Assembly (NCBI GenBank): GCA_000320545.1 | Contig: ADNK01003463.1 | Location: 1 to 40,565 of the forward strand | From: Bigelowiella natans CCMP2755 | Taxonomy: Eukaryota; Protista; Cercozoa | DNA length: 40,565 nucleotides | Direction: 5' to 3' | Shown: positions 18,885 to 20,874 of the stretch, piece by piece | How positions within the stretch are numbered: position 1 is the first letter of the stretch | Layout of the letters: every line of letters begins with the position of its first letter | Position numbers and translations under genes: made by a program | The notes under the pieces: model-generated | The model's input: only the letters and a program-made list of their open reading frames with translations | Databases searched by the model: none | What the model was told of the DNA's origin: nothing

Positions 18885-19811
18885 ACGTGCACGTCCAGAC
18901 GTGTCCAGGTGCGCGCTGCACATCGTGGAGCTACCCACCTGTGATGCAACTTGGCGCAGCCAGCGCAGCGCACGTCATTGCAAGCGCACGAATCATTTCA
19001 TGCACCGTGTGCAGCAGCAGCAGTGATGGTGGACAACGACGCTGGAATGTGATGTGCGTGACACGTGCAGCACAAACCATGTGACACTCAGATTGATGTG
19101 TGGCCCATGAGGGCTCCATGGCGCACCGCGTTTTCGGCTCTGGGTGCAGCAGCATGCAACGCAACACCGCACCAAGTGACACTTGAAAACTTGCGAACGT
19201 GATGAGAAACAACGCTCAAGCAAGCGATGCACACTGCACATGCATGATCGATGCATGCCTGCGATCTGGCGATTCGTGCCTGTGATGAATTTGCTGATGC
19301 ACATTGAATTTGGACCAGCCACAGCCAGCGAACGTGCAAGCGCATGTCACAGCGCACAAGCATCACTGTGTCTGTTGTCTCTTGCACTTCTTCGTTGCGC
19401 ATTGCCTGTCTCCTGCTCTTTGTTGAGTTGTCACGTCCACAATGGACACAGTGACAGCATGTGCAATGCACATGTGATGTCACGTGTCTGTGATAGACAT
19501 AGTAATGGCACATGTAATATGTACATGACATTACGTGTCTATGATGTCCTCAAGCAACAAGCCCAGTGCAGAACTGTTGCCGCCAGCAGTCAAACAAGTC
19601 ACGCACGCGTGGTGCGACACACAGCAATGTGAACGAACCTTCGGCGACTGCTGGACTGGGTCACTGCGCGCGTGAGCAGAGAGACGGAGAAAAGAAAAAC
19701 TGGCATCAATCAGACAACCTCATCTGATTGCATTCTGAAGTCGGAAAAAAAAATGATGTGGCAAGTGGCAAGCAGGTCAAAGCCAAAGTTGTGCAAAAAT
19801 CGCAGGATTTC

Positions 19812-19816
19812 AAAAA
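19812..19816 (-). terminator. Putative Pol III terminator (T5) closing the tRNA cluster
   Basis: Minus-strand TTTTT about 10 nt past the last tRNA-like unit (a T4 run lies at 19820-19823 on the plus strand only); no minus-strand run of 4 or more T inside 19826-20251. Confidence 0.55.
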
Positions 19817-19825
19817 GTGTTTTGT

Positions 19826-19899
19826 TGCACCCAGTCAGAATTGAGCCGACAATTTCTCTGGAGTGAGCAGGGCGTGGTGACCATTGTCACCATAAGTGC
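19826..19899 (-). tRNA. Degenerate tRNA-Val(CAC)-like gene, probable pseudogene
   Basis: GCACTTA TG GTGACAATGGTCACCAC G CCCTG CTCACTC CAGAG AAATT GTCGG CTCAATT CTGAC TGGGTGC A: acceptor and T stems pair and A73 is present, but T54 is C and there are mismatches in the D and anticodon stems. Confidence 0.65.
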
Positions 19900-19918
19900 T
19901 TGAATGATGAGAATGAGC

Positions 19919-19987
19919 AGGCTCCGGAGGGAATTGAACCCTCCACCCATGGTTCGTAGCCGTGGGACCGGATCCACCGGCGAAGCC
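19919..19987 (-). tRNA. Non-canonical tRNA-Arg(ACG)-like gene, 69 nt, distal copy
   Basis: GGCTTCG CCGG TGGAT CCGG T CCCACGG CTACGAA CCATGGG TG GAGGG TTCAATT CCCTC CGGAGCC T. Confidence 0.75.
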
Positions 19988-19990
19988 CAT

Positions 19991-20013
19991 GATCTCGGAG
20001 AATCGAGCTCCGA
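19991..20013 (-). pseudogene. Remnant of a tRNA-Asp T-arm/3' end
   Basis: Plus-strand gatctcggagaatcgagctccga matches the tRNA-Asp 3' end at 20177-20205 with a 6-nt deletion and one substitution. Confidence 0.65.
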
Positions 20014-20028
20014 GGTGGACAAGCGTCT

Positions 20029-20098
20029 AAGCTCCAGAGGGAATCGAACCCTCCACACAAAGCTCAGGAAGCTCGGGACCAGATCCACTGGTGAAGCC
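20029..20098 (-). tRNA. Non-canonical tRNA-Arg(CCT)-like gene, 70 nt
   Basis: GGCTTCA CCAG TGGAT CTGG T CCCGAGC TTCCTGA GCTTTGTG TG GAGGG TTCGATT CCCTC TGGAGCT T; compensatory changes against the ACG copies in acceptor and D stems. Confidence 0.75.
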
Positions 20099-20104
20099 AG
20101 ACAG

Positions 20105-20173
20105 AGGCTCCGGAGAGAATTGAACTCTCCACCCACAGTTCGTAGCCGTGGGACCGGATCCACCGGCGAAGCC
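20105..20173 (-). tRNA. Non-canonical tRNA-Arg(ACG)-like gene, 69 nt, proximal copy
   Basis: GGCTTCG CCGG TGGAT CCGG T CCCACGG CTACGAA CTGTGGG TG GAGAG TTCAATT CTCTC CGGAGCC T; all four stems pair. Confidence 0.8.
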
Positions 20174-20179
20174 TGTGAT

Positions 20180-20251
20180 CTCCGCGTCGGAGAATCGAAC
20201 TCCGATCTCCTGCGTGACAGGCAGGAATACTAACCATTGTACTAACGCGGA
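20180..20251 (-). tRNA. tRNA-Asp(GTC), canonical
   Basis: TCCGCGT TA GTAC AATGGTTA GTAT T CCTGC CTGTCAC GCAGG AGAT CGGAG TTCGATT CTCCG ACGCGGA G; full cloverleaf, G73, intact A and B boxes. Confidence 0.97.
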
Positions 20252-20874
20252 CGTATCTTGCGTGGTGGGGAGAGAACTTTCAAGCACCAGAAGAAGATTG
20301 CGAACGGCAATGCGGAAGCGTTAGGGATTCGGTCGCTAACTTTTCCCACAAATTTCGATGGCATTTGATGTTGTGCGTTGTCGCAGTTACAAGAATTTCC
20401 AACCACCGGTTTCGATAGTTTAAAGTCCCTATATTCGATGTCGCATTCTCAAAACGCCCAACGTTTTTCTGAGAATGATGCGTTCCTACATCGCATCTCG
20501 AAAGCCTGGAAAATCTGTTTTTTCCATTGTGTTTTCAGGAGACAAACTGGAACTTTTTTTTTTCCTGCGAAAGCCCTATTTTTTTTGAATCGCAAGCATT
20601 TGTAATTTCACATTGCGACGCGCAATGGGGAGTGATTCTTGTCTTTTTTAGAGATGTCCTTCATGTCGCGCATGGAAAAGGGAGCGTATTCTGAGTAGGA
20701 TTCGTTCAATGGTTGTGGCCAAACGGCTGAAATCGTTGTGAGTGCGTTTCAGCCGAAGGCCTTCATCACTTGATGGATGAATGATCGGATGTATATCTAA
20801 ATTATGTGTTCTAAATTAATACGCACTCTGGAACACTTCGCGCAACAGTTTAGCCCCTCGTGTCTCAACCGTTG

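Follow-up and report, generated by a model that had tools for sequence, protein, structure and literature searches.

The window, that is, the whole stretch of 40,565 nucleotides of Bigelowiella natans DNA that was analysed, contains a cluster of tRNA genes on the minus strand, in which a canonical tRNA-Asp is followed by three short units (C, B and A) with arginine anticodons. A Gypsy element is also present on this contig; it and the short, numerous exons of the ArgRS genes mark the assembly as eukaryotic. The parts of the cluster, in 5' to 3' order, are listed here together with the evidence for each.

20180..20251, minus strand: canonical eukaryote-type tRNA-Asp(GTC), the first gene of the cluster (Rfam RF00005, 64.1 bits; also called by ARAGORN)
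20174..20179, minus strand: 6-nt spacer ATCACA between tRNA-Asp and unit C (from the sequence)
20105..20173, minus strand: unit C, compact tRNA-Arg(ACG), 69 nt (model R1, 100 bits; ARAGORN tRNA-Arg(acg); 23/23 predicted pairs)
20029..20098, minus strand: unit B, compact tRNA-Arg(CCT), 70 nt (R1, 84 bits; 21/23 pairs; missed by ARAGORN)
19994..20013, minus strand: remnant of a second tRNA-Asp, 20 nt (by-eye comparison with the 3' half of the intact tRNA-Asp)
19993..19988, minus strand: 6-nt spacer ATCATG between the tRNA-Asp remnant and unit A (from the sequence)
19919..19987, minus strand: unit A, compact tRNA-Arg(ACG), 69 nt (R1, 100 bits; ARAGORN tRNA-Arg(acg); 22/23 pairs)
19817..19918, minus strand: transcribed trailer, approximately 100 nt (RNA-derived contigs reach 19826/19829)
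19812..19816, minus strand: first T5 run 3' of the cluster, probably a Pol III terminator common to its genes (from the sequence)

The first-pass annotation had described an unusual unit architecture at 19919-20173, and every stated feature was found there, on the minus strand. In all three units, the 7-bp acceptor stem abuts the 4-bp D stem with a connector of 0 nt (positions 8 and 9 are absent). The D stem is CCGG:CCGG in units A and C and CCAG:CTGG in unit B, the D loop is TGGAT (5 nt) throughout, and a single linker nucleotide follows the D arm. The anticodon stem has seven positions, which are paired 7/7 in unit C, 6/7 in unit A (one C.A mismatch) and 5/7 in unit B. The anticodon loop is of 7 nt with T33 (U33), and the variable region is TG in A and C and GTG in B. 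The T arm is standard, with a 5-bp stem (GAGGG/GAGAG) and the loop TTCRATT, and the discriminator is U73 (T in the gene). Unit B is the weakest member, with its two anticodon-stem mismatches, G37 and a 3-nt variable region. The fold of unit C has an MFE z of -3.9.

Four bases distinguish unit A from unit C: two of them exchange a G-C pair for A-T in the T stem, and one changes a G-C pair to G.U. In the six-member alignment of the family, 97% of the pair cells were paired, compared with 29-59% when the partners were slid, and both-sided changes were present at seven pairs across all four helices. The three compensatory changes proposed previously (acceptor, D stem and T stem) are real in the alignment, and it confirmed the retention of G18G19, A20 and C35 as well as the exclusively arginine anticodons, ACG and CCT. 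Given the paired fraction, the seven double changes and six genome matches as against none in the control, the units are not chance matches.

Units C and B are separated by 6 nt, as are tRNA-Asp and unit C. The order of the cluster is tRNA-Asp, Arg-ACG, Arg-CCT, Asp remnant, Arg-ACG, trailer and a single T5, and no T run of four or longer is present on the minus strand between 20251 and 19817. The tRNA-Asp remnant at 19994-20013 retains the T arm and has lost the 3' strand of the acceptor. Together with the same kind of 6-nt spacer before unit A, it points to a local duplication of an Asp-Arg dimer, in which the spare Asp decayed to 20 nt and the Arg partner kept 22/23 pairs.

Dimeric and polycistronic nuclear tRNA genes are known, including the yeast tRNA-Arg/tRNA-Asp dimer and algal tRNA clusters. 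The cluster in the window resembles these in its spacing of a few bases, its one terminator and, presumably, a common precursor processed by RNase P and RNase Z. It differs in that its downstream partners are non-canonical, are three in number and are accompanied by a decayed Asp copy. The cluster would be transcribed as one precursor, RNase P and RNase Z would separate its members at the 6-nt spacers, and CCA would be added to the compact tRNAs after transcription. Same-strand runs with spacers of approximately 1-20 nt also hold many tRNA genes elsewhere in the genome (contigs C2900, C3482, C2450, C1676 and C274); the two clusters that were read in sequence, those of C274 and C1676, have a single terminator, at the end.

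The trailer contains a stretch, 19901..19827, with acceptor-like ends that pair and a T-arm-like hairpin with the loop CTCAATT. It may be a degenerate or decayed tRNA-like element. As a fourth tRNA it is doubtful: its MFE structure does not form a cloverleaf, and it was called by no scanner. A weak Rfam match to Plastid-ycf2, on the opposite (plus) strand, mirrors the same hairpin.

Four sequencing runs were aligned to 19700-20450, of which two, from different studies, are contig sets with a guessed RNA label. Each of the two studies contributed one whole short contig, at 19826-20158 (333 nt, depth 14) and 19829-20110 (282 nt), respectively. The depth was zero on both flanks of the aligned stretch, which provided a silent control. 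The RNA-derived contigs span the spacers and the trailer and end 10-13 nt short of the T5 run. No contig in the two sets bridges 20158-20179, from tRNA-Asp to unit C. A raw-read run contributed approximately 22 reads, the majority of them derived from tRNA-Asp genes elsewhere. Mature, CCA-tailed or charged compact RNA was not seen in the contigs or in these reads, which are too few for ends, strand or CCA. The contigs agree with precursor RNA from the cluster, as evidence of its presence and not of its strand, its ends or a single transcript.

The units were then compared with the existing tRNA models. No match to RF00005 was obtained for unit A, B or C even at E<=10 (gathering cut-off of 29 bits), and the best match within the tRNA clan was tRNA-Sec at 21.3 bits, relative to the tRNA cut-off of 29. 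ARAGORN missed B and identified the other two as tRNA-Arg(acg). The earlier proposal of a deviant nuclear tRNA-Arg family overlooked by scanners is supported for covariance scanners, the Rfam tRNA model missing all three units. Among the features of a canonical tRNA, the units lack the U8/N9 connector, the 7-11-nt D loop, the 5-bp anticodon stem and a variable region of at least 4 nt, and they have the 7-bp acceptor stem, U33 in a 7-nt loop, G18G19, the T-loop TTCRA and the 5-bp T stem.

The mascRNA-menRNA family (RF01684) matched the units at 27.3, 24.3 and 20 bits, which is due to the absent connector. The two higher matches, and the position of the units between other RNAs at 6-nt spacing, are what might be expected if the units were tRNA-like processing signals, that is, mascRNA-like punctuation for RNase P/Z. 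However, the scores are far under the cut-off of 42.5 bits, and punctuation requires neither a 7-nt loop with U33 nor arginine anticodons nor A20. We consider this explanation, and the related one of tRNA-derived SINE heads, to be very improbable.

The genome (91.4 Mb, 3736 contigs) was searched for the family with two covariance models built from the units, BLAST and an exact scan for the D-arm/T-loop signature. Exactly six compact genes were identified, in three tRNA clusters, and the reversed-control signature scan returned no matches. All six anticodons are arginine (ACG twice, CCT, TCG twice and TCT). Of the further anticodons that the first-pass annotation proposed to look for with a covariance model (TCT, TCG and CCG), the family includes two TCG members and one TCT member. 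The genes outside the window are as follows.

Contig C1676: compact tRNA-Arg TCG and compact tRNA-Arg TCT, each preceded by a tRNA-Gln at a distance of 5 nt
Contig C3490: compact tRNA-Arg TCG in a degenerate cluster, with a mismatch and an altered T loop

Over their 70 nt, the two C1676 copies differ only at anticodon base 36 (TCG as opposed to TCT), and the tRNA-Gln genes upstream of them differ at the anticodon (TTG as opposed to CTG) and at one other base. The two comparisons indicate a duplicated Gln-Arg dimer that diverged almost only at the anticodons. Together, the compact units bear signs of selection within the genome on the fold and on the anticodon. Random anticodons and dispersed SINE copies, either of which had been expected of a non-functional family, were absent; BLAST, the two covariance models and the exact scan found only six copies, every one inside a tRNA cluster, and a dispersed repeat or SINE head was rejected on this basis.

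Several other tRNA-like elements were noted in these searches. A 55-nt stretch on contig C1072 (L010:1500-1556) scores 30-35 bits with the compact models. Its ends are acceptor-like and it has the T arm, but the D arm is missing, and it may be a relative that was truncated. The C3490 cluster also contains tRNA fragments and two odd tRNA-like units (L007:1374-1446 and 1580-1649) with a normal T arm and an oversized anticodon loop, the second of which scores 40 bits with R1. A second kind of tRNA-Asp(GTC) is confined to tight clusters, on C1676 (L005:1581-1653) and in two copies on C2450 (L047). This kind has T37, is unlike the standard tRNA-Asp of the window in sequence and scores 55.7 bits with Rfam.

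The genome also contains exactly six canonical tRNA-Arg genes (ACG twice, TCG, CCG, CCT and TCT), as identified with model R2, ARAGORN and a D-arm pattern, and all five canonical arginine anticodons are covered. The first-pass annotation had asked whether canonical tRNA-Arg(ACG/CCT) genes were absent. They are not, and a missing canonical set was ruled out by all three methods. The compact genes are thus a parallel set that makes up half of the arginine-tRNA genes, and not a replacement. The canonical genes are solitary, each with its own T-run terminator, and encode tRNAs of 73 nt in which the connector is TG, the D loop has 9 nt, the anticodon stem 5 bp and the variable loop 5 nt. Their R2 scores are 72-105 bits; the compact models report only one of them (TCG), at approximately 35 bits. 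The two sets share arginine anticodons and the GGA (G18 G19 A20) of the D loop, and the U73 of all six compact units also occurs in three out of five canonical isoacceptors. They differ after the NCG anticodons, where the canonical tRNAs have G37 and the compact units A37.

Arginine identity is specified by A20, C35 and U/G36 (PMC9976931). Two ArgRS loci were identified in the genome, with genes split into many short exons. No genome match was found to PF03485, the ArgRS N-terminal domain that binds A20, the ArgRS genes being fragmented in this way. Genes for trnR(tcg) and trnR(tct) are present in the mitochondrial genome reported for Bigelowiella natans (PMC4757882), and import of the compact tRNAs into the mitochondrion was accordingly set aside as uncalled for.

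Outside this genome, phage contigs were scanned for the D arm and T loop pattern with the anticodon unconstrained. The scan identified 69 distinct units, 61 with the full helix set, and 60 of these 61 have arginine anticodons (ACG 34, CCG 12, TCG 6, TCT 4, CCT 2 and GCG 2). The same scan of bacterial and archaeal genomes yielded mostly chance matches and 15 valid units, all with arginine anticodons (15/15), on cyanobacterial, myxobacterial and Burkholderiales contigs; several of the valid units lie in arrays of 20 or more tRNAs. The number of paired positions was bimodal, with 7-19 of 23 in the chance matches and 20-23 in the real units. The first-pass annotation had proposed a nuclear tRNA-Arg family. 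The design is not special to this nucleus: it belongs to a class that is widespread in the tRNA arrays of phages and bacteria.

A second test, which made no sequence demand on the D arm or the anticodon, was applied to the retrieved loci and returned 111 compact candidates. Every unit with a CCNG-NGGAN-CNGG D arm was arginine (94/94), and in nine further units, also arginine, the D stem covaries and the D loop still has GGA. The prokaryotic covariation of the D stem (CACG:CGTG, CTAG:CTAG, GAGC:GCTC and others) establishes that its outer pairs are real. Six of the candidates form a second compact type, with a CAU anticodon and a different D loop. This CAU type (Met or Ile2) is also connector-less, lacks A20 in its D loop (NCGGT or GTGGT) and lies in the same arrays (for example, at L102, L107, L108, L141, L202 and L216; also L086:12760-12829 and L104:3586-3654).

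The cultured carriers of compact tRNA-Arg are Roseobacter-group and Rhodobacter phages. In five of the six cultured phage records, there is no GenBank annotation at the compact site. In Rhodobacter phage RcXuper (L370, 12847-12916 of the record), a compact tRNA-Arg(ACG) of 57.8 bits occupies an unannotated gap of a tRNA array; 13 tRNAs are annotated in that stretch and the compact one is omitted, as it is in four other cultured roseophage records. A BLAST search of unit A against named phages returned chance partial matches only. Members of the class have diverged beyond the reach of BLAST, and a pattern or model is needed to find them. A metagenome scan for the algal T-arm/acceptor motif yielded 23 contigs, with no algal-type compact gene among them, and the better-scoring motif matches were all canonical bacterial tRNAs of 72-75 nt. 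No description of the compact tRNA-Arg class was found in the literature on tRNA identity, prokaryotic tRNA arrays or algal tRNA genes, in which coverage of subscription journals was partial.

The phage and bacterial units share with the algal ones the 7-bp acceptor without a connector, the D arm CCRG-YGGAN-CYGG, one linker base, the 6-7-bp anticodon stem, the loop C/U-U-NCK-A-A, the short variable region and the normal T arm. They are likewise arginine only and lie in tight tRNA arrays, where several isoacceptors are often found side by side. The A37 of the algal compact NCG units is present in 76/77 prokaryotic units. There are also differences. CCA is encoded in 68/111 prokaryotic units and in none of the algal ones, and the discriminator is a mix of G, A and U in the former and always U73 in the latter. 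The last variable base is G in the algal units, two of which have only two variable bases, and is usually C in the prokaryotic units. The neighbours of the algal genes are eukaryote-type tRNAs on a nuclear contig, unlike those in the phage and bacterial arrays. The best identity of the algal units to a phage or bacterial unit is 65-77%, and that between the two algal groups is 65-72%; these values are inflated, as approximately 20/70 positions are fixed by the pattern. The A37 after NCG and the conserved D arm point to a bacterial or phage-type ancestry, which on sequence comparison would have been followed by eukaryotic adaptation (no encoded CCA, U73).

The same comparison raises the question of whether the algal genes are relics, that is, tRNA genes of bacterial or phage array type that came into the nuclear genome, were duplicated with their neighbours and are transcribed as passengers, neither charged nor used. 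The A37, where canonical algal NCG tRNAs have G37, is consistent with this, as are an identity to phage and bacterial units as high as that between the algal groups, the imperfections of unit B and the C3490 copy, and RNA evidence of the precursor type only. However, the compensatory changes arose among copies within the genome, the C1676 pair diverged at the anticodon only and every anticodon is still arginine. Moreover, the encoded CCA is gone and U73 is present in 6/6 units, and the adjoining Asp copy decayed where the Arg unit did not. On balance, we regard relics as quite unlikely.

Units A, B and C are probably genuine arginine tRNAs of a bacterial/phage-type compact class, arranged in a multi-gene cluster; charging and decoding are putative. 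This reading is favoured by the retained elements, namely G18G19, the T loop, U33, A20, C35 and G36/U36. The loss of bases 8 and 9 and of parts of the D and variable loops would be offset by the longer anticodon stem, and the elbow would be held by G18G19 and the T loop, with U33 and the 7-nt loop preserved. The compact tRNAs would be charged by ArgRS through A20, C35 and G36/U36 and would decode arginine codons beside the canonical set. Some members may be decaying, such as unit B with its two mismatches and the C3490 copy with a mismatch and an altered T loop. Against a functional reading, the complete canonical set makes the compact genes unneeded on paper.

The coexistence of a full canonical and a full-looking compact set suggests a division of labour, and the compact tRNA-Arg could be functional outside bulk cytosolic translation. 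The roles considered were in the periplastidial space round the nucleomorph, in ATE1-type arginine transfer and in decoding under attack by tRNA nucleases. Backup against tRNA-cutting nucleases is the role usually proposed for phage-borne tRNAs, and phage tRNA arrays are where the class is concentrated. The two ArgRS loci would also suit a function outside bulk translation, as would an RNA ligase located approximately 2.3 kb upstream of a compact tRNA-Arg in one phage contig. Conversely, four arginine anticodons, including the wobble-type ACG, suit ordinary decoding, and an amino-acid donor would have no need of such a range; for the mitochondrion, the trnR(tcg) and trnR(tct) of the mtDNA (PMC4757882) leave no call for import. 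A role outside bulk translation is, overall, unlikely.

The ligase (L092:5067-5699; phrog_24030, E = 7e-63) precedes a tRNA-Ser and the compact tRNA-Arg, a possible tRNA-repair context. The same phage contig bears the unit that is most similar to the algal group-1 units.

A further proposal, which we put forward only tentatively, is that a eukaryote co-opted a compact tRNA-Arg of phage or bacterial type into its nuclear tRNA clusters as a second isoacceptor set (ACG, TCG, TCT and CCT), for a purpose that the canonical fold cannot serve, and that the compact fold is an unrecognised and widespread class passed over by present-day annotation pipelines. Such a purpose could be, for example, translation in a separate compartment or escape from tRNA-targeting nucleases.

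The first-pass annotation had likened the units to tRNA-Pyl and the mammalian mt-tRNA-Ser(UCN), both of which have a short connector, a small D loop, an anticodon stem of more than 5 bp and a 3-nt variable region. The resemblance stands for the architecture, as the core is shrunk in the same way, but there was no sign of common descent. Both of these tRNAs retain one connector base, whereas the compact units have none. G18G19 and the T54-Psi55-C56 motif are absent from tRNA-Pyl and present in the compact units. The anticodon, amino acid and synthetase of tRNA-Pyl and mt-tRNA-Ser(UCN) also differ from those of the compact tRNA-Arg, and the hallmarks of tRNA-Pyl (a CUA anticodon and no G18G19) were not found in the units, which have ACG or CCT and G18G19.

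The known exceptions to the cloverleaf are oddities such as the Pyl, Sec and animal mitochondrial tRNAs. If the compact tRNAs are charged and decode, then U8, N9, a D loop of at least 7 nt and a 5-bp anticodon stem would be dispensable for a mainstream amino acid. In the algal genes, a tRNA of prokaryotic type may have been adapted to expression in a eukaryote. As the class is missed by covariance scanners, tRNA-Arg counts are too low, and half of the tRNA-Arg genes of this genome would escape such scanners. The concentration of the class in phage arrays links it, in a way that can be tested, with tRNA-targeting defence and with recognition by ArgRS, and the compact, A20-dependent scaffold may be of interest for orthogonal tRNA design.
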